Shown piece by piece: positions 4,408 through 30,416 of a stretch of DNA of 64,000 nt (the first letter of the stretch is position 1; every line of letters begins with the position of its first letter). The position numbers and the translations under genes are program-made. The stretch spans positions 372,001 to 436,000 of IMG/VR virus record IMGVR_UViG_3300028654_000001; one strand, written 5' to 3'. Under the pieces are notes generated by a model, which saw only the letters and a program-made list of their open reading frames with translations, was not told the DNA's origin and did no database searches.

Positions 4408-4464
4408 TTGAGCTGTCTCCGTGAAATGGGGAGTACGCGTACTAAGCTATCGGTGATAAAAGGA

Positions 4465-4680
4465 TCAATCAGGGCAGCCAGCACAGCCCCTTCGAATAAC
4501 GTAGGAGAGTGATGGGCCACTATCAGGTATCAAGTTGAGTGTCCCATGAGAGAAGTTCGCCTTGATGATCTTAGCCCCTCTTCTATCAAGTATGGCCGTA
4601 CCCTCATTGATAGCCGTAAAGCACCGACCCATGTCCTCAGGAGACATGACATCATTACACTCGAAAGGAACCCCGAACAC
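4465..4680 (-). CDS. Small hypothetical protein (start uncertain)
   Basis: 71-aa ORF filling the gap on the coding strand. Confidence 0.35.
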   Translation of the reverse strand: MFGVPFECNDVMSPEDMGRCFTAINEGTAILDRRGAKIIKANFSHGTLNLIPDSGPSLSYVIRRGCAGCPD

Positions 4681-4842
4681 CTAGGTGGATACACCGAGGA
4701 AGGCTTTGATTCTCGCTTGAGTCTCAACAGGGGCCTTCTTCACCTCTGATTCCCATACCACTAAGCACTCAATTCCAATCTCTGCAAAGGCAACTACCAA
4801 CTCAGACTCATGCTCGAAGTTAGCCAGAAAACCGCCGCTAAC
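4681..4842 (-). pseudogene. Orphan C-terminal fragment of a Vsr/DUF559-like homing endonuclease
   Basis: Start-less frame translates to ...FEHESELVVAFAEIGIECLVVWESEVKKAPVETQARIKAFLGVST*, matching the LVxWExE C-terminal strand/helix of Vsr-like nucleases. Confidence 0.5.
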
Positions 4843-5470
4843 TCACCCCCAGGAATTTTGCCGGGGCGAGCACCCCTCTACCGACGTACGGGCCGAAACT
4901 AGACCGGATGCCCGACCCGTAGCGAGGTTGCTGCAAGCCTCGGATGATCTTCACAGTAGCCTTGGCTCTTTCAAGCTGGGCGGTGAATTGATCGATCAAG
5001 CTCTGTTTCATATCACTGTACTTAGCAGACTTCTCAAGATCCAAAGAAACACCTCCAATCGAGTAGCTATTGTGGGCCAAGATCCCATTCGCCAGTACGA
5101 AGTTCTCAGGACCGGGAACAGATAAATCATACATAAAAGGTCTAGAGAGCGCCTCTCTAACCCCAAGAATTAGCTCTTTACCTAGGAGGTCTCCTTGAAC
5201 CACAGCTATGGGTTCACGATCTTCAAACTTATTTGAGGGCTTTGCTACAGGGAGGAGACCCCTCATTGAAAACAAACTATGGTCTGTTGTAACAATAACC
5301 TGTCTTCCATCCAGTAAGGTAACTTGAACGCAATCTTTCTCACTAGAGGGATGCTTAAGGATTGCAGTAACCTTTGACTTAGTAACACGCCCAGTAGGGG
5401 TAACTGATCTAACCCGCAGTAGACCAGCCTGAAAAGCACTCTTGATTGCGGACCTAACTTCCGGTTTCAT
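4838..5470 (-). CDS. Split-intein C-precursor: IntC (~134 aa) plus 76-aa C-extein of a neck/adaptor protein
   Basis: Block B IVTTDHSLF; blocks F/G MYDLSVPGPENFVLANGILAHN|S; no block A. Likely start is ATG at 5470 after GAGGTG (ORF track starts at 5476). Confidence 0.9.
   Translation of the reverse strand: MKPEVRSAIKSAFQAGLLRVRSVTPTGRVTKSKVTAILKHPSSEKDCVQVTLLDGRQVIVTTDHSLFSMRGLLPVAKPSNKFEDREPIAVVQGDLLGKELILGVREALSRPFMYDLSVPGPENFVLANGILAHNSYSIGGVSLDLEKSAKYSDMKQSLIDQFTAQLERAKATVKIIRGLQQPRYGSGIRSSFGPYVGRGVLAPAKFLGVS
5069..5470 (-). mobile_element. C-terminal half of split intein (IntC)
   Basis: TxxH and terminal His-Asn (AAT at 5071-5069), followed by Ser+1. Confidence 0.9.
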
Positions 5471-6434
5471 AGACACCTCGCAAGGTCACAAGAAGGTCTC
5501 TGACCCTATCAACCCAAACAGAAAAGTCACCTGAATCATGCTCAGGAACCCTAAGAAGAGTCCAACCATGGTTCAGTAGATAGGTGGTCTTTCGTTTGTC
5601 CAACTTTGCAATATCAGGATTAGCTGTAAGACCGCAGATAGAACACCCATGCCAGTAACAACCATCAACCTCTATAGCCAGCTTTAGTTCAGAGAATGCT
5701 TCGTCAATATGGTAATAACCCACTCTGAACTCTCGTTGAAACCCATGAACACCAGCTTCAACTAAAGCCGCTTCAAACCTCTGATGGAGTTTAGAGAAAG
5801 TTCTCCTGATAAACCCACGAGCCTTAGCAGCAGATTCCCGTATCTCACCCCGGTGCTCTTTTTGATATAAGGCCTGCTTAGCTACAAAATCAGGATCTTT
5901 CCAGAGCTTAGCACTTCGCTCTCCTACTCTCATACGTGCCTCAGGGGTTTTATTATACTGAGTCAAATGAAGGGTAGCCCTTTCACGATAACCTGAGTCT
6001 TGCATCCGACGAGAAGCTTCAGCTATCTGATTCCGCGTCTTTTTCCCCTCAGGCGTTTGAAACCTAAGTTTAAGAGTTTCAGCTTGCGCTATCTTCTGAG
6101 CTTCAGTCTTCTTTTTTTTAGCACGAGTAACTGATGAAGTTAGAGCAGCATTTGGCCACTTTTCCTGGTATTGGCTGAGTGTCAAACCGGAACAGGACTT
6201 TAGATGCTTAGTAGAGATACTTGCTTGTTTTCCTCTACACTCAAGGCAAGTAACGAAGTGCTCACCTTCTATAAGATTACTTAGACTACTCTCTACAATT
6301 GCTGACCCGACAGAACCAGAGCTAACTAATACCCCAGCCGATACTAGGTTGATCAATGCACGTTGATTCATTCCAAACTGAGTAGTTACACTCAATCTTG
6401 ACCTACAACCGATTGGAACCCTAAAACCAGCCAT
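5454..6434 (-). CDS. Free-standing Vsr/DUF559-type homing endonuclease with N-terminal Zn finger and NUMOD-like helical region
   Basis: CLECRGKQASISTKHLKSCSGLTLSQY (Zn finger); FQREFRVGYYHIDEAF..LAIEVDGCYWHG..DKRKTTYLLNHGWTLLRVPEHD (DUF559/Vsr core). Confidence 0.85.
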   Translation of the reverse strand: MAGFRVPIGCRSRLSVTTQFGMNQRALINLVSAGVLVSSGSVGSAIVESSLSNLIEGEHFVTCLECRGKQASISTKHLKSCSGLTLSQYQEKWPNAALTSSVTRAKKKKTEAQKIAQAETLKLRFQTPEGKKTRNQIAEASRRMQDSGYRERATLHLTQYNKTPEARMRVGERSAKLWKDPDFVAKQALYQKEHRGEIRESAAKARGFIRRTFSKLHQRFEAALVEAGVHGFQREFRVGYYHIDEAFSELKLAIEVDGCYWHGCSICGLTANPDIAKLDKRKTTYLLNHGWTLLRVPEHDSGDFSVWVDRVRDLLVTLRGVYETGS

Positions 6435-7196
6435 TTAAGAACCATAACATATATCGTACAGGTCCGCTATAGTTACATCGACTTCTTGACCCTCAGGTAA
6501 GATTACACGAACCTCAGTCTCAGGAGCAATCGAGAACTCATCCGCGATCCAATTACTTTGAAGCATTTGAACAGCAAAAGACATGGCGGCAGTGAGAAGT
6601 AAGGTCTTCCACTCACTCTTCATCTGGACCATGTGGTCGACATCTTGGAAGAACGTCCTCGGTGGGGCGGCAATGATCATGTCTAGACCTTCGTCTAGAC
6701 ATTCGATGAGCTCCTCATCTTCCCAGATGTACCCGAATACACGACTGAACTGGTCAACAGTTTGCTCGTGGGCTGGGGGCCTAAATTTGTAGTTCTTGTC
6801 GGGATTGTTGTCTCGGGTGAGGATCCTCATTCTCCTTACCAACTCCATCTGTATCGCAGTATGACAGCTAGGGGTACTCGACTCTCTATCAGCAACATTG
6901 AACTCCTGTAGAGCCGTCTGAATAGGTCCACCCACCATTTCTCGGATAGTCCACCTAACTCGATAGTCTCCAAGGTTGGCATCCAGAGGTACCACAATGT
7001 TGGCAAAGTACTCGCCAACTGAAGCATTCACTGGAATCCGTCGTAGAGGGCCTACTAGAACCTCGAGGCCGGTTGTATTGTCATAGACGGCATAGTTGAT
7101 CTCAGCTGCATTGATCGGATGCCCTGAGGCGTTGGTAAGAAATACATTCAGGTCATTCCTACCTAGTTGTTGCCCGCGATAGAATAGAGTTCCCAT
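6435..7196 (-). CDS. Split-intein N-precursor: 221-aa N-extein of putative head-tail adaptor/neck protein plus 32-aa IntN
   Basis: ORF ends ...WIADEF|SIAPETEVRVILPEGQEVDVTIADLYDICYGS*, which is intein block A. The N-extein has an Ig-like domain and a helical adaptor-like WEDEEL..PPRT region. Confidence 0.85.
   Translation of the reverse strand: MGTLFYRGQQLGRNDLNVFLTNASGHPINAAEINYAVYDNTTGLEVLVGPLRRIPVNASVGEYFANIVVPLDANLGDYRVRWTIREMVGGPIQTALQEFNVADRESSTPSCHTAIQMELVRRMRILTRDNNPDKNYKFRPPAHEQTVDQFSRVFGYIWEDEELIECLDEGLDMIIAAPPRTFFQDVDHMVQMKSEWKTLLLTAAMSFAVQMLQSNWIADEFSIAPETEVRVILPEGQEVDVTIADLYDICYGS
6438..6533 (-). mobile_element. N-terminal half of split intein (IntN, 32 aa, Ser1)
   Basis: S-I-A-P-E-T-E-V-R-V...VTIADLY fits the block A pattern; Ser codon TCG at 6533-6531. 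Confidence 0.8.
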
Positions 7197-7199
7197 GGT

Positions 7200-7667
7200 C
7201 TAAAACCTTCTCCCGCCACAACAGTGATACCCAGGCCCCCACTCCCGCTCGAGCCACTCCCGTTCCCCATGGTGATGCCCATCTGGTCTACAAGGGTTGT
7301 GGTGGAACTCAGCTGGACTGAATACCTCGAACCCAAATCGATCTTCTTGCAGTGGGCCCTCGAAGTACTCCTGAAACACCCATTCTACATACCACTGACC
7401 AGACTGCCCACCCTCACCAGCATACCCAGTAGCGTAGTACTCACCTATATCAGCTTGAACAGGCATCCTATGGCATGGAAATACCTTGATTAAGTGACTG
7501 CAATGAGGGCCATGATGTTCCCGAGGCTTAGGGTGATACAGCAAAGTATACTTGATGCTGTAAGGGCTAAAAGGAGACCCAGCCCCATCAACAATGTAGA
7601 TCGGTAGATCACCACGTTGAAATAGATGGCCACACTTGAACACACCAGGGCTTGATTTAACAATCAC
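7200..7667 (-). CDS. Virion Ig-like protein, paralog of the N-terminal domain of the neck protein
   Basis: FQRGDLPIYI..RMPVQADIGEYYA..GQWYVEW aligns with LGRNDLNVFL..RIPVNASVGEYFA..GDYRVRW; His/Trp-rich tail. Confidence 0.65.
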   Translation of the reverse strand: MIVKSSPGVFKCGHLFQRGDLPIYIVDGAGSPFSPYSIKYTLLYHPKPREHHGPHCSHLIKVFPCHRMPVQADIGEYYATGYAGEGGQSGQWYVEWVFQEYFEGPLQEDRFGFEVFSPAEFHHNPCRPDGHHHGEREWLEREWGPGYHCCGGRRF

Positions 7668-12455: not shown

Positions 12456-15400
12456 ATGACTATCGCTGGTATCAAAGTTCTCATAGTTGGAAAACAATTC
12501 GAACTCCCATATGACGTTGTTAATCTAGAGGGTACAGCACACCTACTCGAAACAATTGCCACTTTTAGGCCGGACGTTATAGTCACCTCAGACTACATAC
12601 CTGGATCTCTTACTATGGCTTGTTACGATCTCAGGAAGAGGTGGATCCATATACCCCCTGATGTATCAAATAAAGAACTTTGCGCAAATATTGAGAGTTG
12701 CTACTCTTTCAACATTTGGACAGAGCAGGAGTTTTCAAAAGACCACCCTATGGTCTCGGTCTACACCCCAACCCATGACACTGGAGATTACCTGCAAGAT
12801 ACCTTTCAGTCACTAAGAAGTCAGACCTATGTGAACTGGGAATGGATCGTTGTAGACGACCAATCCTCTGACAAGACCTGGGCTAGACTTCAAGAATTTG
12901 CAGCTCAGGATTACCGGATTAGACCTTTTCAAAGTGGAATACACCTAGGAAAGATCGGAGCTCTCAAAGATCTGACAACCAGACTGTGCAGGGGGAAGTA
13001 CTTAGTTGAGTTAGATCATGACGACATGCTTACGGAAACCGCTCTTGAAGAGGTGAAAAACACCTTCGAGGCCAACCCAGATGTTGGCATGGTCTACACA
13101 AATAGCGCATCATTCTATGAGAACGGGTCCCCTCAACGCTTTAATGGATCCCCTTGGGATGCTCCTGATAGGTATCGTGAAGTCGAGTACCACGGACGAA
13201 AGTATTTAGAGTGCAGCAATCCAAATATTTATGACCGCTTTGGACCTCACTTCACTCAAGTGTTCGGCTGGTTCCTCACGGTAGGCCCTCATCACATCAG
13301 AGCCTTTCGTGCAGAGACCTTTCGTCAACTAGGAGGCTACAACCCAGAGCTCCCCATCGCCGATGATTGGGACCTGTATGCTAGGTTCTTCCTGGAATCC
13401 AAGTGCTTTCACTTGGATAAGCTCCTGTACTTGTACCGATATCGAGACGGATTTGGAAATGTAACGTTCCAACGTCTCCAGTCTATCCAGGATCATTTAG
13501 CCCTAGGCCGAAACCACTATATGGATAAGTTCAAGAATAAGAACGATGAGTTACTAGCTAATCACCCACCCATGGTTCCTAATCCTATCTCAACAAGTGT
13601 TGGAGAGAAGAGCACGTCTGCTGATCTATCCTTCGTTGTCCTTGATGCCACGGGAAGCCAGAATGCCATTGATTGCTTGAAAAGCTTGAGATATTATGCC
13701 CCTGATGCGGAGATCATACTTGTTGAGAACGGTTGTAGGTCAAAAGCTAGCAATGAGGCCAACATAGTTCTTGAGAGTTCTCACAATCTGGGTTTTGGCG
13801 GGGGGTGCAACCTAGGAGCCTGTGCGGCCAATCGTCCGTATCTGTGCTTCATTAATGATGACGCGGTACTCGTGGACACAGTGACCGTCCCGAAGCTTCT
13901 AGACGCTGCCAAGAAAAACTCCATAGCTGGGAGCTACTCGGACAGAGCAAAGCCCCCCCAAGGTGACTGGTCCCATGACTCAGTCCCAAAGGATGACAAG
14001 GCCCTGCCCATGGTAGCCGGGCTCTGCATGGTATTGTCCAAGAGCCTGTTTGACTCCCTAGGTGGTTTTGACCCAAGGTTCATGACGTGGGAAGACGACG
14101 ACTTTTGTGTTAGGGCTGGACGCCTTGGGGTGACCAGCGTGGCTGTAGGAGGGGCCTTCGTACACCACAAGGGCCACCGGACCTTCGAAACTATGAAGTT
14201 GGACCATGTAGCAGTCGAAGCTGAGAACCAGAGACTCTTCAGAGTGAAACACCAGAAGATCAAGGTCATCGCCATTGCCAAGAATGAGGAAAATTGCATT
14301 GTCGAGTTCTTCAAGCAGTTCGAGTCAATCACGAGTAGTTGGTACATGCTTGACACGGGGTCGACGGATAGGACTGTTGAATTAGCCAAGTCTATTGGAG
14401 TAGAGGTAGTCAAAGGTCCATTCACAGACTTTGCAACTACTCGTAACCAAGCTTTGAAGCTATTTGACTCAGAAAATAGCTGGGTCATCATGCTCGACCC
14501 CGACGAACGTTTGGACAAGCGCACCATTGAAGCTATCCCCGAGCTGATCTTCAACAGGCGTATCGTCTCACAGAGCGTATTTGATACCTATCTTGCTCCT
14601 TTGACTGCTGTCTATCCGGATGGGAATAGGAAAGAGTTCGTGGCCAAGCCCTTCCTGTTCAAGAACAACCCTACTTCTAGATGGGTCTTCAAAGTTCATG
14701 AGAAGTGGATCACTAAGGATCATTGCTCGAACTATGGTCAGTGCGCGATAGTCACCAATGCACTCATCGAGCATAGGATTGAGTTTCACACGGGCAAGCA
14801 TCGTGATGGAGCTGAAGGATTGTACTCCAGGTTGATGTCAGAAGAGCCCTACTTTCAAGACTTGGACTACAAGACCCGGATGCGCGAGGAGTTCCCAATA
14901 CTTGACTATGACCGCACTGAGGATCCACGAATAACCAAGATACAAGCAGGGCCCTTAGTCAGCGTAGTGATCCCTACTTACAAGCGAACAGACCTCTTGA
15001 GGAAAGCAGTACTATCCGCTCTGACTCAATCCTACAAGACTCTGGAAGTCATCATTGTTGGAGATCACTGTCCAGAACTGGATTCAGCTGCATTCGGAGA
15101 ATGGCCCTACTCAGAAGAACCTCGAGTTAGAGTTGTCAACTTGGCAAAGAATTACGGAGCTGGTGGTGCAGAGCCTAGAAACGTAGCAATCAATCTAGCC
15201 GCTGGGCCCTACATCGCCTATTTGGACGATGACAACACCTGGGCAAAGGACCACGTGAGCAACTTACTGACTACCATCTTGGCTGAGAACAGTATCTGGG
15301 GTTGGTCGTCGATGATGGTGAACGGGATTGATATGGTGTTTGACCGATTAGAGAAAGGCAAGATCGATACCTCGTGTGTCATTCACCACAAGAGTCTCAT

Positions 15401-16217
15401 ACTAAAACACGGTGGGTGGAAGCCCCGAACCGAAGCGAACTACTGGCATGACTACGAGCTGTTCTCACGTTGGAGAGAGGAGCCTCAAACGGTAACCAGG
15501 TACCCGTCAGTTAACTATAATGCTAGTGCTTCGGGCCAAGGAGCTTTTCTGGCTAGTCTGACCTCTTCAGATCGAGTCACCGACATCCCATTTGAACCCC
15601 TAACTTCCATACCATCAGAACCAAACCTCTTGACCATTGGTATTCTCAGTTTGGAGTTCCGAGCTGAAATGCTAAATAAGTTGCTACAAGAGCTAGAGAG
15701 TCAAAGAAGTGCCCTCCCCTTTCCTGACTCAGTAAGAATCGTAAAAGTGGATACTAGAGAGGCCACTGTTGGTGAAAAACGACAGAAGATCATAAATGAA
15801 TGCAGTACTGAGTATCTATGCTTCGTAGATGACAATGACATGATTGAGCACAATTACCTAAGCTCAATCCTACGAGCTCTCAAAGACAATCCAGACTGTG
15901 TAACCTTCAAAGGCATAATCACCACGGACAGTAAGAACCCAGAGCTATTCCGCTTATCCTTGCATTACTCAATAGGGGCTTGGTCCAAAGATGTTCAGGG
16001 AACTCACATGCGAACCCCCAATCATCTATGTCCAATGAAGGTTAAGTTAATGAGGAGAGTGGCTTATCAGGACATCACTTCATATGAGGATGCTCTCTGG
16101 GGTATGTGGATCTACCCACTATTACACAGCCAGTGTCACATTGACGAAGTTCTTTACCACTACCAGTACAGCCCAACTGGGTCTGAAGCAGCTAAGAAAG
16201 CACCAAAGCTCATGTGA
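12456..16217 (+). CDS. Multidomain glycosyltransferase with five tandem GT2 (GT-A fold) domains
   Basis: Domain starts VSVYTPTHD, LSFVVLD, IKVIAIAKNEE, VSVVIPTYKR and LTIGILSL; acidic DxD-type motifs LDHDD, INDDA, LDPDE, LDDDN and VDDND. Confidence 0.9.
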   Translation: MTIAGIKVLIVGKQFELPYDVVNLEGTAHLLETIATFRPDVIVTSDYIPGSLTMACYDLRKRWIHIPPDVSNKELCANIESCYSFNIWTEQEFSKDHPMVSVYTPTHDTGDYLQDTFQSLRSQTYVNWEWIVVDDQSSDKTWARLQEFAAQDYRIRPFQSGIHLGKIGALKDLTTRLCRGKYLVELDHDDMLTETALEEVKNTFEANPDVGMVYTNSASFYENGSPQRFNGSPWDAPDRYREVEYHGRKYLECSNPNIYDRFGPHFTQVFGWFLTVGPHHIRAFRAETFRQLGGYNPELPIADDWDLYARFFLESKCFHLDKLLYLYRYRDGFGNVTFQRLQSIQDHLALGRNHYMDKFKNKNDELLANHPPMVPNPISTSVGEKSTSADLSFVVLDATGSQNAIDCLKSLRYYAPDAEIILVENGCRSKASNEANIVLESSHNLGFGGGCNLGACAANRPYLCFINDDAVLVDTVTVPKLLDAAKKNSIAGSYSDRAKPPQGDWSHDSVPKDDKALPMVAGLCMVLSKSLFDSLGGFDPRFMTWEDDDFCVRAGRLGVTSVAVGGAFVHHKGHRTFETMKLDHVAVEAENQRLFRVKHQKIKVIAIAKNEENCIVEFFKQFESITSSWYMLDTGSTDRTVELAKSIGVEVVKGPFTDFATTRNQALKLFDSENSWVIMLDPDERLDKRTIEAIPELIFNRRIVSQSVFDTYLAPLTAVYPDGNRKEFVAKPFLFKNNPTSRWVFKVHEKWITKDHCSNYGQCAIVTNALIEHRIEFHTGKHRDGAEGLYSRLMSEEPYFQDLDYKTRMREEFPILDYDRTEDPRITKIQAGPLVSVVIPTYKRTDLLRKAVLSALTQSYKTLEVIIVGDHCPELDSAAFGEWPYSEEPRVRVVNLAKNYGAGGAEPRNVAINLAAGPYIAYLDDDNTWAKDHVSNLLTTILAENSIWGWSSMMVNGIDMVFDRLEKGKIDTSCVIHHKSLILKHGGWKPRTEANYWHDYELFSRWREEPQTVTRYPSVNYNASASGQGAFLASLTSSDRVTDIPFEPLTSIPSEPNLLTIGILSLEFRAEMLNKLLQELESQRSALPFPDSVRIVKVDTREATVGEKRQKIINECSTEYLCFVDDNDMIEHNYLSSILRALKDNPDCVTFKGIITTDSKNPELFRLSLHYSIGAWSKDVQGTHMRTPNHLCPMKVKLMRRVAYQDITSYEDALWGMWIYPLLHSQCHIDEVLYHYQYSPTGSEAAKKAPKLM

Positions 16218-16993: not shown

Positions 16994-17278
16994 TTAACCC
17001 ACCTTTTCTTTACGTTCGACCACACTTGTAGATATAACTAACACACTAAGTAACCCTAATACTAGGCACAAGTAGGCCAAGTAAGATGTACCTTCGACAA
17101 CATTACCTACTCGTCTTCTGACAATCGAGGGTGTACCCCCGAGCGAAGGTGTGGTACCCCCGACCCCGAATGTACCCCCGACCCCGGCTGCACCTGCATC
17201 CATAACTGTGGTTAACGAGAGGAAACCGAAAACCAAGAGCAGTACAAGTATGGCTAGTTTAAATCGTTTCATTATCAA
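16994..17278 (-). CDS. Small membrane protein (two hydrophobic segments, GGT-rich loop)
   Basis: LAILVLLLVFGFLSL and YLAYLCLVLGLLSVLVI segments. Confidence 0.6.
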   Translation of the reverse strand: MIMKRFKLAILVLLLVFGFLSLTTVMDAGAAGVGGTFGVGGTTPSLGGTPSIVRRRVGNVVEGTSYLAYLCLVLGLLSVLVISTSVVERKEKVG

Positions 17279-19560
17279 TTTGGAAGTAGCAAACCATAGA
17301 TATAAATGTCGACATCACCATCAGTGACAGTGCCAACAACCGTAATGTTGCAGTAGATAACCTGATTATAGTTATACACCGCCTCATAAGCATTCAAAGA
17401 AGTCATGCCTGAGCCGAGCGATGCAATAGCTTCTCCAGCAATGACTGTTAGTACGCTTGCCGAAGTAACTGTAACTGGATTGATGATTTGGGTACCACCC
17501 GAGGTCGAACCGATAGAAACAGTCACGTTACCTGCTCCAACAACCGCTACAGACAAGCGCAAAATACAACGAGTCAGAATAAATCTACCCGACCCAGTTG
17601 GAGAGGGGACCGTATAGATCCCAACTGTTCGAGTTCCAGCAGAAAACCCGACTCGGGAAGTTACTTGCAAGCCGGTGTCGCCCTGGAATCCTTGCCAACC
17701 CTGATTTCCTTGGTTTCCTTGAAATCCGAGGTTACCCTGATTTCCTTGAAATCCGATGTTGCCTTGAAATCCGATGTTACCCTGATTTCCTTGATTTCCG
17801 ATGTTGCCTTGGGATCCGATGTCACCCTGATTTCCTTGGTTTCCTTGGAATCCGATGTCACCCTGATTTCCTTGGAATCCGAGGTTGCCTTGGATTCCGA
17901 GGTTACCCTGATTTCCTTGGTTGCCTTGAAATCCGAGGTTACCCTGATTTCCTTGGTTGCCTTGGGATCCGAGGTTACCCTGATTTCCTTGGTTGCCTTG
18001 GGATCCGAGGTTACCCTGATTTCCTTGGAATCCGAGGTTACCTTGATTTCCTTGGAATCCGAGGTTACCCTGATTTCCTTGCCTACCCTGATTTCCTTGG
18101 TTTCCCTGAAATCCTGTTAGACCAGTTGCCCCAAAACCCCTCATCACTTGAGTCCCGGAACCACTATAAGCAACCGCTACGAATAACCCTCCCCCGTAAG
18201 TTACGGAAGTCCACCCTGATACCTGTGATGGGGTACTGTCAACCCAATTAATGCCATCACTGGACCTCATCACTTGAGTCCCGGAACCACCATTAGCAAC
18301 CGCTACGAATAATCCTCCCCCGTAAGTTACGGAAGCCCAAGTTGCAACCTGTGATGGGGTACTGTCAACCCAATTAATACCATCACTGGACCTCATCACT
18401 TGCGTTCCGGAACTACTATAAGCAACCGCTACGAACAATCCTCCCCCGTAAGCTACGGAAGTCCACCCTGATACCTGTGATGGGGTACTATTGAACCAAT
18501 TAATGCCATCACTGGACCTCATCACTTGAGTCCCAGAACCACTATAAGCAACCGCTACGAATAATCCTCCCCCGTAAGCTACGGAAGTCCACCATGACAC
18601 CTGTGATGGGGTACTATTGAACCAATTAATGCCATCACTGGACCTCATCACTTGAGTCCCAGAACCACTATAAGCAACCGCTACGAATAATCCTCCCCCG
18701 TAAGCTACGGAAGTCCACCATGACACCTGTGATGGGGTACTATTGAACCAATTAATGCCATCACTGGACCTCATCACTTGAGTCCCGGAACTACTATAAG
18801 CAACTGCTACGAACAATCCTCCCCCGTAAGCTACAGAAGTCCAAGCTGCAACCTGTGATGGGGTACTGTCAACCCAATTAGTACCATCACTGGACCTCAT
18901 CACTTGCGTCCCAGAACCACTATTAGCAACTGCTACGAATAACCCTCCCCCGTAAGCTACAGATTCCCAAGTTGCAACCTGTGATGGGGTACTGTCAACC
19001 CAAGTAATAACTATAGGGATACCTGCTAACCCTTGTCTACCCTGATTCCCTTGTCTACCCTGCCATCCTTGGTTACCTTGAGGACCCTGATTCCCTTGTC
19101 TACCCTGCCATCCTTGGTTACCTTGAGGACCCTGATTCCCTTGAACCCCTGATCCAATGATTCCCTGCCACCCTTGGTTCCCTTGGTTCCCTTGGTTCCC
19201 TTGGTTCCCAGACAATCCGGAATCCCCTTGCGAGCCTTGAACTCCTGTACCCTGGAAGCCCTGATTACCCTGGACTCCAATCAATCCGACGTCTCCTTGG
19301 TTTCCTTGGTTCCCCTGATTGCCCTGCCATCCTTGCGGGCCTTGTGATCCTTGGTTCCCTTGGAATCCGATGTTACCTTGCCAACCCTGATTTCCCTGAT
19401 CTCCCGTCCCTTGGAAGCCCTGGACTCCTTGAGATCCGGTTGACCCAACATCTCCCTGATGCCCTTGGTTTCCTTGAGAGCCAGTTAACCCGGTGAGACC
19501 TTGGTTTCCCTGCCAACCTTGGTTGCCTTGGTCTAATTTCAGTTTGTTGACAAGATACAT
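17275..19560 (-). CDS. Collagen-like fibre protein with internal 7-repeat beta-propeller
   Basis: G-x-Q triplet tracts flank seven 42-aa WxxSxPSQVxxWxSVxYGGGLFVAVA repeats; C-terminal beta domain. Confidence 0.85.
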   Translation of the reverse strand: MYLVNKLKLDQGNQGWQGNQGLTGLTGSQGNQGHQGDVGSTGSQGVQGFQGTGDQGNQGWQGNIGFQGNQGSQGPQGWQGNQGNQGNQGDVGLIGVQGNQGFQGTGVQGSQGDSGLSGNQGNQGNQGNQGWQGIIGSGVQGNQGPQGNQGWQGRQGNQGPQGNQGWQGRQGNQGRQGLAGIPIVITWVDSTPSQVATWESVAYGGGLFVAVANSGSGTQVMRSSDGTNWVDSTPSQVAAWTSVAYGGGLFVAVAYSSSGTQVMRSSDGINWFNSTPSQVSWWTSVAYGGGLFVAVAYSGSGTQVMRSSDGINWFNSTPSQVSWWTSVAYGGGLFVAVAYSGSGTQVMRSSDGINWFNSTPSQVSGWTSVAYGGGLFVAVAYSSSGTQVMRSSDGINWVDSTPSQVATWASVTYGGGLFVAVANGGSGTQVMRSSDGINWVDSTPSQVSGWTSVTYGGGLFVAVAYSGSGTQVMRGFGATGLTGFQGNQGNQGRQGNQGNLGFQGNQGNLGFQGNQGNLGSQGNQGNQGNLGSQGNQGNQGNLGFQGNQGNQGNLGIQGNLGFQGNQGDIGFQGNQGNQGDIGSQGNIGNQGNQGNIGFQGNIGFQGNQGNLGFQGNQGNQGWQGFQGDTGLQVTSRVGFSAGTRTVGIYTVPSPTGSGRFILTRCILRLSVAVVGAGNVTVSIGSTSGGTQIINPVTVTSASVLTVIAGEAIASLGSGMTSLNAYEAVYNYNQVIYCNITVVGTVTDGDVDIYIYGLLLPN
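17680..18117 (-). repeat. Collagen-like G-N-Q/G-F-Q 9-bp-unit repeat tract
   Basis: Direct repeats such as ccctgatttccttgg and ccgaggttaccctg. Confidence 0.9.
18139..19002 (-). repeat. Seven 126-bp tandem repeats (beta-propeller blades)
   Basis: Near-identical 126-bp units; units 3 and 4 give identical translations. Confidence 0.95.
19022..19527 (-). repeat. Collagen-like G-x-Q repeat tract (N-terminal)
   Basis: GNQGWQGRQGNQGPQ repeats. Confidence 0.9.
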
Positions 19561-28109: not shown

Positions 28110-30416
28110 TCAGGTCTTCTTATAACAGCCGTTCAACGTCAGCCGTGTGGTCTTTGAAATAGTCTCAATCCCAAACTTATGACGAAGTTTCCTAATGGCT
28201 ACTTTAGATACGCTATAAAGTTTAGCGATCTGGTCATCACTATTGCGAAGGTATAGGTCTGAAAGAACATCCTTGGTCAACGAATCAAAAGAAAGGCTCC
28301 CAGAGGCCTTGGCACTTCTCTGGGTAAAGCTAATTGTTTGGATCCCCCACCGCTTTCGCTGCTGAGAGATCAAAACATCCGAAGTCCCGAATCTCTTACC
28401 GATCTCAGCATCAGTCATTAATTGGGCCTCGTACAACTCTCTCAAAGCGGCCTCAGTCAACCCAGATACCTTGGTATCACAGGTCTCTTTCTTATTGGGC
28501 TCTTTTGGTAGTTGGTAACAAGGAACCAAACACGTCCCCCCACCCTTCAGAAAGACTAAAATAGGTTCCATTCTATGATGACTACCGAAAGAGCCAAGCT
28601 TCATCTCAAGAGTACCCTCATACTCAAACCCGCACAGCTCGGCCATTCTAATTGACTCACTAACCAAAGGCAGTTGGGATCCATCAACTTGGATATCAGC
28701 CACATTAAGTAGCAGTCTTCCACCTGGGGCCAGACTGTTGAAGGACTTAGCTAGTAGTACAGAGAGAAATCTACTCAACCATAGATCCCAAGTTGGGTAA
28801 CGAACCCAACTCTGAGATGGATCATTGGAGTACCGCTCAACAGAAAAGTACGGAGGGCTAGTGAGAACCAAGTCAGCCTGAATATCACCTAGGTCTACCT
28901 CCTCAATTGGTTGATTGAAGAAAGTTAGGTTGACTCCTAGTAAATCCTGCAACTTTTGAAAAGACTCCCCAGCCTTCGGGTGAGGATCAACCCCAATATA
29001 TCGACGACCTGCTGCCAAAGCTCCGACAGCCCTACCCCCATATCCAGCACAGGGATCCAACACTAAACCACCAACTGAGGAGAAGTCCTCTACCAACCTC
29101 TTAGCAATAGCTGGTCTAAAGTTGGAAGGGGTTCGTACTATAGCTCGAAGTGCTCGAAATACATTCATTGGATACAGAGGGTCCCCAACTTTCAATTGGA
29201 AGTCTACAGCTCTTCGAATCAAGGCGGGGTCAAACCAAGCCCTAGTAAGAGATGGATTCTGTCCGTTGGTCGCTTCAAATCTATGTGGGAAGGCGGCCTG
29301 ACATACTGCTAACCCTACTCGACCACCCCCCTCAATCACCCCGTCACTTACTTTCGCCAAGGTTCTATGGCGTAGATTAGTGAAGTCCCTAACAACCTCA
29401 TCGTCAGAAGGCGGCTCTGGTAGCTTGAGTGAGGTTAGCAACTCAATCAAGGGTTCACCTTGCAACCCAGAATCTACGATACCTTTTGCTTCTTCCCAGG
29501 TAGGAATATACTTCGAGGTGTCTATTACAAAACCTGAACTTTTAACCGATCTTCGTACGGTATCGACCGAAGACCCTGTTGCCTGAGAAATCCACTCTAA
29601 GGATCGACCTTGCTCAACATAGTCACCAAGTTGATCCCTTAGTAAGTCAGCCGAAGATAGACCCCTAGCCCTGGGCACTAGTTCCAACTTATAGCCCATT
29701 GAAGGGGGGATATGAGGGGCTACCAAGTCCAAGAACCTGGTAAGGCTCTCACGATCGTGCAGCCATATATCAGCATCGTTAGTCTTGTAGAGTACAGGTA
29801 CGAGCCCAAACCGTTTCAGGAGTTCGAGTTGAACTTGTTGATCCTCGGGCCTTGGTGAAACAGAAAACCTAACATACCCGTTGGAGGTTTTTGAGCCATC
29901 ATCCAAGAACCAAATGGCCAAAGAGAAGGCATCAAACTCCGCAAGATCTATGTTGGAGAAGGACTTGTTCCCAGAACCATCAGGGTAGGCTTGCTTCCAA
30001 TAGGGGTATAAGTCCCTGGAACTATGCAGAGTCAGGCGAGATCCTGTATAGGTAACCCCATTCTTCACCGTCTTAGCTGGTTTGACTGAGCAAAGATGAT
30101 CGCCCCAAAGGGCGGCTTTCCAAGAGATGTAGTCATGCTGTTGGTCCGAGTGGTATTCACAGAGGCTTGCTGTGCAATCACTGCGAGAGGTGAGCCCAGC
30201 ATCTCCGAGTAGAGAGCCCAAGAGGAGAGTCTTCTGTAGTTGGGTCAGGGGCGGCAACTTCAAACGATCCGACTTTTGAATAGTCTGGATCTGGTACTTC
30301 ATTCTTCGTAGACTCACCTGCCTCTGACTCAACCCATACAACAAACCAATCTTGATCTCGGATAACCCATCATCCAGGTAAAGCCTGCGAAGTTCGGCTT
30401 CAGTGACGTCTGCCAT
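28110..30416 (-). CDS. LAGLIDADG endonuclease - amino DNA methyltransferase fusion with HTH repeats
   Basis: LLLGSLLGDAGL and LAIWFLDDG (LAGLIDADG); SNFRPAIAK, VLDPCAGYGG (motif I) and LTSPPYF (motif IV); HTH at the N-terminus and two at the C-terminus. Confidence 0.85.
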   Translation of the reverse strand: MADVTEAELRRLYLDDGLSEIKIGLLYGLSQRQVSLRRMKYQIQTIQKSDRLKLPPLTQLQKTLLLGSLLGDAGLTSRSDCTASLCEYHSDQQHDYISWKAALWGDHLCSVKPAKTVKNGVTYTGSRLTLHSSRDLYPYWKQAYPDGSGNKSFSNIDLAEFDAFSLAIWFLDDGSKTSNGYVRFSVSPRPEDQQVQLELLKRFGLVPVLYKTNDADIWLHDRESLTRFLDLVAPHIPPSMGYKLELVPRARGLSSADLLRDQLGDYVEQGRSLEWISQATGSSVDTVRRSVKSSGFVIDTSKYIPTWEEAKGIVDSGLQGEPLIELLTSLKLPEPPSDDEVVRDFTNLRHRTLAKVSDGVIEGGGRVGLAVCQAAFPHRFEATNGQNPSLTRAWFDPALIRRAVDFQLKVGDPLYPMNVFRALRAIVRTPSNFRPAIAKRLVEDFSSVGGLVLDPCAGYGGRAVGALAAGRRYIGVDPHPKAGESFQKLQDLLGVNLTFFNQPIEEVDLGDIQADLVLTSPPYFSVERYSNDPSQSWVRYPTWDLWLSRFLSVLLAKSFNSLAPGGRLLLNVADIQVDGSQLPLVSESIRMAELCGFEYEGTLEMKLGSFGSHHRMEPILVFLKGGGTCLVPCYQLPKEPNKKETCDTKVSGLTEAALRELYEAQLMTDAEIGKRFGTSDVLISQQRKRWGIQTISFTQRSAKASGSLSFDSLTKDVLSDLYLRNSDDQIAKLYSVSKVAIRKLRHKFGIETISKTTRLTLNGCYKKT

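Follow-up and report, generated by a model that had tools for sequence, protein, structure and literature searches.

A gene for a predicted virion protein of a huge phage, fractured by an atypically split Ser1/Ser+1 intein and a free-standing endonuclease gene

Introduction

Can two gene fragments of a huge phage, which are separated by a stop codon and a complete endonuclease gene, give rise to one protein? This question is raised by a locus on the minus strand of a 64,000-nucleotide (nt) stretch, hereafter called the window, of the IMG/VR contig IMGVR_UViG_3300028654_000001, a huge-phage genome record of 512,571 bp. The two fragments encode the N-terminal and the C-terminal part (exteins) of a predicted virion protein, called the host protein below, and each of them carries one piece of an intein. 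We consider it highly probable that a class 1 mini-intein lies after residue 221 of a host protein of 297 amino acids (aa), that it is split by the endonuclease gene and that the protein is rejoined by trans-splicing. Protein trans-splicing at this locus is very likely, because the intein motifs are conserved, the segments appear to be under purifying selection, the residue following the intein (+1) is Ser or Thr, and uninterrupted as well as contiguous alleles are present in relatives.

Organization of the fractured gene

The open reading frame (ORF) listing of the window contains three tightly packed ORFs on the minus strand in the order N-fragment, endonuclease and C-fragment. The N-fragment ORF (6435-7196) encodes 253 aa and consists of a 221-aa N-extein and a 32-aa N-terminal intein piece (IntN) with Ser in the first position. 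Its tail reads ...NWIADEF, followed by the Ser-initiated piece and a TAA stop codon. This stop directly adjoins the ATG (6434) of the endonuclease ORF, and both share one frame in the window.

The C-fragment ORF (4838-5476) probably starts with the ATG at 5470, which is preceded by the Shine-Dalgarno sequence GAGGTG 5 nt upstream and fits the 210-aa database gene call. The GTG at 5476 is the less likely start. Since the ATG at 5470 was taken as the start, the C-terminal intein piece (IntC) has a length of 134 aa. The same ATG overlaps the 3′-end of the endonuclease gene by 17 nt. The IntC, which includes block B (TTDH) and a terminal HN, is followed by a 76-aa C-extein with Ser in the first position, and the junction reads ...AHN/SYSIGG.

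The three ORFs, which abut or overlap, are probably co-transcribed. A scan for promoters and terminators inside the locus yielded nothing above chance. The G+C content across the intein and the endonuclease (window 5000-6600) is 0.43-0.45 compared to about 0.50 in the flanking exteins, which is consistent with a foreign origin of the insert. No DNA similarity to deposited phages was found.

All features proposed for this DNA in a first-pass annotation were recovered in their places on the minus strand when ORFs and sequence were checked. Its central proposal is borne out by the ORFs, the motifs and the homologues: the gene is fractured, its Ser1/Ser+1 intein is split atypically, and a free-standing endonuclease separates the halves.

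The two exteins form one protein in related phages

The search with the N-fragment returned 439 relatives, and the insertion site was analyzed in the best 120. Among these, 95 are uninterrupted at the site (...DEF-xYSIGGVSL...), most of them with a length of 294-306 aa, and 25 are fractured like the window. The junction of the uninterrupted alleles reads ...DEF-[D/S/N/G]YSIGGVSL... The search for such an allele, which had been suggested along with the first proposal, was therefore successful.

The lengths of the two exteins add up to 297 aa (221 + 76). The uninterrupted homologue P0004 has exactly 297 aa and is about 90% identical. When the extein DNA was joined computationally to display the empty site, the resulting 894 nt equalled the length of the P0004 gene (L003:6001-6894), with an ungapped nucleotide identity of 78%. 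In the cultured jumbo myovirus Tunturi 5, a single homologue of 283 aa (gp319) aligns with both exteins. The expectation that the joined exteins give a seamless 297-aa protein is confirmed by the uninterrupted homologues including P0004. Since these homologues cover both exteins, it is excluded that the exteins are normally separate proteins.

The presence of the intein is reflected in the residue at the junction. In all 120 intein-bearing alleles the +1 residue is Ser or Thr, compared to 14 of the 95 empty alleles, in which the position is occupied by Asp (63), Ser (13), Asn (8), Gly (8), Ala (2) or Thr (1).

The ratio of nonsynonymous to synonymous substitution rates (dN/dS) was calculated against the closest relative with the same layout (L025). 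It was found to be about 0.08 for the N-extein, 0.04 for the IntN, 0.15 for the endonuclease and 0.09 for the IntC. The N-extein values range between about 0.03 and 0.08, and those of all five segments between 0.03 and 0.15. Judged by these ratios, the intein halves, the endonuclease and the exteins are under purifying selection. The triplet of genes recurs on three independent contigs (370 kb, 434 kb and 6 kb) as well as at 12 loci of IMG/VR.

Motifs, charge and cysteines of the intein pieces

The C-fragment matches the Pfam family Intein_splicing (PF14890) with 39.9 bits, which is above the gathering score of 35.8. Compared to PDB sequences, it aligns to solved mini-inteins from their residue 40-60 (approximately) to their end, so that only the first part of the HINT domain is missing from it. 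The split is atypical, as the break lies before block B, which is located in the 134-aa C-piece, and leaves only 32 aa in the IntN. The motifs of class 1 inteins are present, with Ser1 after ...ADEF, TTDH, YDL (block F Asp) and AHN/S. The upstream piece had been described as containing block A only; block A is indeed present, and the 32 aa include in addition a short N2-type helix (TIADLYDI).

In 116 aligned C-fragments, the IntC positions H40, T61, D63, H64, Y114, D115, G129, A132, H133 and N134 are invariant or nearly so. The pair K39-H40 corresponds to the NX motif, a conserved His with Lys or Arg before it, which was found to be specific to Ser1 inteins (PMC10189870). H40 fits this motif because it is invariant in the 116 sequences, preceded by R, K or Q, and located upstream of block B in a Ser1 intein. 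The +1 residue of these C-fragments is Ser in 106 and Thr in 10 cases. All 25 IntN pieces of the fractured homologues start with Ser, and their length ranges between 30 and 43 aa with the exception of one outlier of 86 aa.

The IntN of the window has a net charge of -6 and the first 40 aa of the IntC a net charge of +8, also when counted from the ATG at 5470. These values agree with the first-pass annotation. The complementarity is no family trait, since the charge of the IntC N-terminus is about 0 family-wide and that of the IntN is -2 to -7. It was therefore rejected as a family hallmark, and only the acidity of the IntN is general.

The window intein contains two Cys, one in the IntN (DICYGS) and one in the IntC (EKDCV), both at non-conserved positions. 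With Ser as both nucleophiles, catalysis would be thiol-independent, as suggested in the first-pass annotation; the intein itself is not strictly cysteine-less, having one Cys in each half. Fully Cys-free pieces were found for 21 of 120 IntC and 9 of 25 IntN. Judged by these alignments, the intein belongs to a large family without a catalytic cysteine and with a very short N-piece.

Contiguous alleles and the HINT fold

An exhaustive search with the C-fragment revealed contiguous mini-intein alleles of 456-495 aa at the same site, for example P0243 and P0247. The N-fragment of the window aligns to residues 1-254 of P0247 and the C-fragment to residues 260-456, leaving a gap of 5 residues that falls in a loop. 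In an alignment of ten contiguous alleles, the split position coincides with the single loop of hypervariable length.

The AlphaFold 2 (AF2) model of P0247 contains a confident HINT intein domain with a predicted local distance difference test score (pLDDT) of about 85-94. In this model, the break lies between a short helix (residues 245-252) and the next helix (260-266). The template modelling (TM) scores against solved inteins range between 0.73 and 0.86; among these inteins are Pho RadA, Npu DnaB, VidaL and the Aes123 PolB1 split intein, which is cysteine-less. As modelled indirectly on P0247, which the two pieces of the window tile, they would together make up one complete HINT fold.

The endonuclease between the halves

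The endonuclease ORF encodes a Ros/MucR-like zinc finger near residues 58-100 and, in its C-terminal part, a putative nuclease core. Orthologues on the 370-kb and 434-kb contigs are 40-48% identical over their full length. The C-C-H-C zinc ligands and the motif ExDGCYWHGC are invariant in three orthologues. The endonuclease is putatively Vsr-like: the ExDG...WHG motif is invariant, and the matches to Vsr, DUF559 and MTES_1575 are sub-threshold, the MTES_1575 match of the L005 orthologue being listed unmarked.

In IMG/VR, 12 full-length relatives of the endonuclease were found, and every one is flanked by the same N- and C-fragments, with one of these loci cut by the contig end. Judged by this arrangement, the endonuclease has been a dedicated partner of the split intein for a long time, similar to the fractured genes described by Dassa et al. 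(2009).

A second endonuclease gene appears to have been present nearby. In the 430-nt gap at 4408-4837, a 39-aa ORF (window 4681-4800, minus strand) matches the extreme C-terminus of a DUF7487 endonuclease-like gene, which is intact directly after the connector-like gene in L003, L002 and L025. By this match the ORF is what is left of another free-standing endonuclease gene after decay.

Proposed mechanism and alternative explanations

The following course of events would account for the locus. A Vsr/DUF559-like endonuclease gene would have invaded the loop after the first hairpin and helix of the intein and so have split the intein together with the host gene. After translation, the acidic IntN tail (32 aa) of the first fragment would dock on the 134-aa IntC head of the second fragment and complete the HINT fold. 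An N-O acyl shift at Ser1, helped by the NX-motif His and the block B Thr and His, would be followed by the attack of Ser+1, resulting in a branched oxyester. Cyclization of the terminal Asn and an O-N shift would then release the complete protein of 297 aa, in which Ser takes the junction position that is usually Asp. The endonuclease would keep and spread the element by cutting alleles that lack it, and the phage would need splicing only because the element occupies a needed gene. As close relatives carry intein-free or contiguous-intein alleles, the element looks selfish and dispensable.

Several points weigh against trans-splicing as the explanation. The phage is uncultured, and splicing is predicted from its sequence. 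The association between the +1 residue and the presence of the intein (Fisher p 5e-45) is uncorrected for phylogeny, and the dN/dS values are rough, with dS near saturation. The Vsr, DUF559 and MTES_1575 matches of the endonuclease all lie below the Pfam thresholds, the strong +8/-6 charge complementarity is peculiar to the window allele, and the function of the host protein is deduced from annotation-level and low-confidence structural evidence. The first of these points also speaks for an alternative in which the halves no longer splice and serve as a non-covalent dimerization module or as separate subunits, so that the virion would contain two polypeptides. Split-intein halves bind tightly even if they are catalytically dead, and a nick might be tolerated at the junction, which the host model places in a loop of poor prediction quality that connects two long helices. 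We nevertheless regard dead halves as improbable. Ser1, the NX His, TxDH, the block F Asp and the terminal HN are invariant in 116 IntC and 25 IntN, and the shift from mostly Asp in the empty alleles to Ser or Thr in all intein-bearing ones is expected only if the branched-ester step is selected.

A further alternative holds that trans-splicing has been co-opted as a regulatory step, setting the time of assembly or capping the amount of connector-like protein, and a role of this kind had also been proposed in the first-pass annotation. The arrangement is widespread and old, with an endonuclease that diverged to 38-48% identity while staying in place. The oxyester inteins characterized so far are slow; PolB16 has half-times of tens of minutes, and such a rate might in principle hold up maturation. 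The main point against such a role is that empty alleles with about 90% identical exteins, contiguous alleles and split alleles coexist in close relatives, which makes the split dispensable. In addition, the conserved endonuclease, the decayed second endonuclease gene nearby and the other intein sites described below are typical of the turnover of selfish elements. Nothing points to a timing or limiting function, which is accordingly left unsupported, and its probability is rated lower still. An artefact of assembly or sequencing as the source of the stop codon and the intervening ORF, or a contiguous precursor produced by read-through and frameshifting, has a negligible probability, even though the stop of the N-fragment and the ATG of the endonuclease are adjacent and in frame in the window. 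The three-ORF layout is repeated across independent samples and assemblies, so that an artefact is ruled out. In L004 and L005 the ORFs adjoin out of frame or with an overlap, the C-fragment lies in another frame with its own Shine-Dalgarno sequence and ATG, and the endonuclease appears to be under purifying selection as a separate protein. The read-through and frameshift model was rejected, as the junction frames vary between orthologous loci.

Trans-splicing of the two fragments thus remains the favoured explanation. The coordinates of the features are listed in Table 1.

Table 1. Features of the fractured gene in the window
Feature	Position (nt)	Strand	Basis
N-extein, 221 aa: N-terminal beta-sandwich, then first helices	6534..7196	-	ORF; ~90% identity to P0004 residues 1-221
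IntN, 32 aa: Ser1 codon 6531-6533, block A and N2 helix, TAA 6435-6437	6435..6533	-	ORF; aligns to P0247 residues 225-254
Free-standing homing-endonuclease gene, 326 aa (predicted)	5454..6434	-	Weak Pfam/PDB matches, orthologues
Ros/MucR-like C2HC zinc finger of the endonuclease	~6135-6263	-	Weak PDB match to Ros
Vsr/DUF559-like nuclease core of the endonuclease	~5535-5771	-	Sub-threshold Pfam matches
IntC, 134 aa	5069..5470	-	Pfam Intein_splicing, PDB intein alignments, 116 homologues
NX-motif K-H of the IntC	5351-5356	-	
Block B TTDH of the IntC	5279-5290	-	
Terminal His-Asn of the IntC	5069-5074	-	
C-extein, 76 aa: +1 Ser codon 5066-5068, stop 4838-4840	4838..5068	-	ORF; aligns to the C-terminus of Tunturi 5 gp319

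Other intein sites and three-piece relatives

The host gene carries inteins at more than one position. A second site, called site a (...LRD[NQ]/C...) to distinguish it from the site of the window (site b), is occupied by contiguous inteins in P0035, P0079, P0253 and L015. In a 485-kb uncultured phage (LR745208; L002:6001-8375), a related intein is split at site a (...LRDQ/C..., Cys1/Cys+1) with an IntN of 33 aa. Its halves flank a TnsA-like PD-(D/E)xK endonuclease (PF08722), and the C-fragment reads straight across site b (EEF-DYSIGG). This endonuclease was rejected as a relative of that in the window, as it belongs to another family and only a short repeat is common to both. The inteins at the two sites are homologues, with an identity of about 29% (E ~1e-11), and both are broken at the equivalent loop.

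On IMG/VR contigs of 104 kb (L012:377-4025) and 222 kb (L009:347-4068), both sites are split and the gene is present in three pieces. The order is N-extein with IntN-a (Cys1), TnsA-like endonuclease, IntC-a with the middle extein and IntN-b (Ser1), Vsr-like endonuclease, and IntC-b with the C-extein. Both splits have a short IntN. Because of the three gene pieces, two trans-splicing reactions would be needed there; the window carries the site-b split only. No report of a natural three-piece arrangement was found in the literature.

We tentatively propose that the connector-like gene of this huge-phage lineage is an intein hotspot. Its two homologous mini-inteins, which start with Cys at site a and with Ser at site b, would each have been split at the same early loop by unrelated free-standing endonucleases (TnsA-like and Vsr-like), and the two three-piece loci would rebuild the protein with two orthogonal split inteins. 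If this is true, these loci could represent the first natural example of tandem trans-splicing of a protein, and their two inteins with short IntN a ready-made orthogonal pair.

Two further arrangements were observed. In P0292, an intein occupies a third site close to the C-terminal end of the host protein (GPW/C...VVHN/T), and the distant homologue P0296 contains two tandem Ser1 inteins with just 6 extein residues between them.

Comparison with known split inteins and fractured genes

The arrangement itself is of a known kind. The fractured genes gp41-1, NrdJ-1, IMPDH-1, NrdA-2 and TerL with free-standing Vsr-like or GIY-YIG endonucleases were described by Dassa et al. (2009; PMC2677866). The order of N-extein with IntN, endonuclease and IntC with C-extein on one strand, the phage origin, the overlapping or abutting ORFs, an endonuclease that is Vsr-like (putatively so in the window) and the opposite local charges of IntN and IntC are common to these genes and the window. 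Most of them are split canonically with an IntN of about 90-100 aa and use Cys, whereas the split found here lies after about 32 residues and both nucleophiles are Ser. Their hosts are enzymes of DNA and nucleotide metabolism or packaging, each in two pieces (PMC2677866), whereas the host of the window has no enzymatic signature.

The biochemically characterized PolB16 OarG split intein from a sheep-gut metagenome (Pasch et al., 2023; PMC10189870) is similar to the window intein in its described features. Both are natural atypical splits with a short, synthesizable IntN and a long IntC, Ser1/Ser+1, class 1 motifs, an NX His and few non-catalytic cysteines. The IntN of PolB16 OarG is shorter (15 aa compared to 32 aa), with an earlier split point, its host is a PolB DNA polymerase instead of a predicted virion protein, and it is characterized, whereas the intein of the window is known from its sequence. 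With this precedent, the first-pass annotation overstated how unusual an atypically split Ser1/Ser+1 intein is. The same applies to the structural nature of the host, as inteins in portal proteins of virions are known (PMC4760082). Those portal inteins (SPP1 gp6-like; Novikova et al., 2015) are likewise inserted in a virion or assembly protein and not in a replication enzyme, and they differ in being contiguous and in their protein and insertion site. A search of the literature found no publication that describes a connector-like virion protein with a split intein.

By description, AceL-TerL, GOS-TerL and VidaL resemble the window intein in their short IntN and the split in the N-terminal region, and differ in their hosts (terminase or unknown). 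Their IntN have a length of 16-37 aa, and the nucleophiles of the TerL inteins are Cys. The VidaL structure (6vgv) matches the modelled contiguous homologue with an E-value of 1.2e-7. The Aes123 PolB1 or CL cysteine-less split intein has the same Ser1/Ser+1 oxyester chemistry and NX motif as predicted for the window, and the fused Aes123 PolB1 structure (9hth) ranks among the top matches by sequence as well as by structure. It differs by its canonical split, its long IntN and its PolB polymerase host.

Cysteine-independent split inteins with a synthesizable IntN have been described as very rare (PMC10189870). The family identified here comprises at least 120 sequence clusters of natural, atypically split Ser1/Ser(Thr)+1 inteins that could be useful for protein ligation, and its matched contiguous and empty alleles as well as its Cys-free members may serve as a pool for fast, soluble or mutually orthogonal variants. 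With this locus, the range of fractured genes would grow beyond replication and nucleotide enzymes and include a predicted virion protein of huge phages that is non-enzymatic. The whole evolutionary series proposed by Dassa et al., from the empty site over the mini-intein to the mini-intein split by an invading endonuclease, is present in a single gene. The locus also suggests that endonucleases of different families have repeatedly settled in intein loops.

Identity of the host protein

Profile scans of the host fragments in the window gave no Pfam or PHROG match, and neither these fragments nor P0004 match phrog_17327. This family, annotated as 'head-tail connector protein', was matched by 21 of 43 uninterrupted homologues with a best E-value of 9.9e-8, and Pfam scans of the 43 homologues gave noise only. 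Tunturi 5 gp319 has the same label, which comes from an automatic pipeline (Phold-type) without proteomics. Downstream of the locus, a 449-aa ORF is homologous to the 'minor tail protein' gp322 of Tunturi 5 (E 8e-34), and an upstream neighbour carries a Gp80 fibre domain.

An alignment profile of the host protein against PDB sequences gave nothing meaningful. The AF2 model of an uninterrupted allele has a pLDDT of 59, which is too uncertain to name the fold; the host models of low to medium confidence contain an N-terminal beta-sandwich, long helices and a disordered tail. The best structural matches in the PDB were BppU of TP901-1 (E 5e-3 to 1e-4, with poor TM) and a siphophage adaptor (6e-2), and no convincing match of the host models to solved adaptor structures was found with Foldseek. 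The matches in BFVD, obtained with host models of low confidence, were BppU-like, neck-passage or tail proteins and gp165 of phage G. The latter was rejected as a guide to function, since it is a partial homologue, unannotated and absent from the phage G proteomics text.

The structural, neck-like nature of the host protein claimed in the first-pass annotation is thus retained as a prediction only, based on the PHROG 17327 matches in 21 of 43 homologues, the Tunturi 5 label and the synteny with the 'minor tail protein'. From this evidence, the host protein is predicted to be a virion protein, possibly of the neck.

Neighbouring genes

The gene directly upstream of the N-fragment (window 7200-7667, minus strand) encodes a protein of 155 aa. 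Its N-terminal part is similar to the beta-sandwich domain of the host protein, with an identity of 27% across 99 aa (E 4e-9), and adjacent genes therefore have a paralogous domain.

A 768-aa ORF (window 28110-30416, minus strand) contains a LAGLIDADG_2 domain in front of an N6/N4 DNA methylase domain. It was rejected as a second intein of the window because it has no HINT motifs, and represents a fusion.

A protein of 1253 aa with several family-2 glycosyltransferase domains is encoded on the opposite strand (window 12456-16217, plus strand), and a protein of 761 aa with collagen triple-helix repeats and EPTP-like repeats on the minus strand (window 17275-19560). The glycosyltransferase and collagen-repeat proteins suggest glycosylated fibres or decoration near the module.

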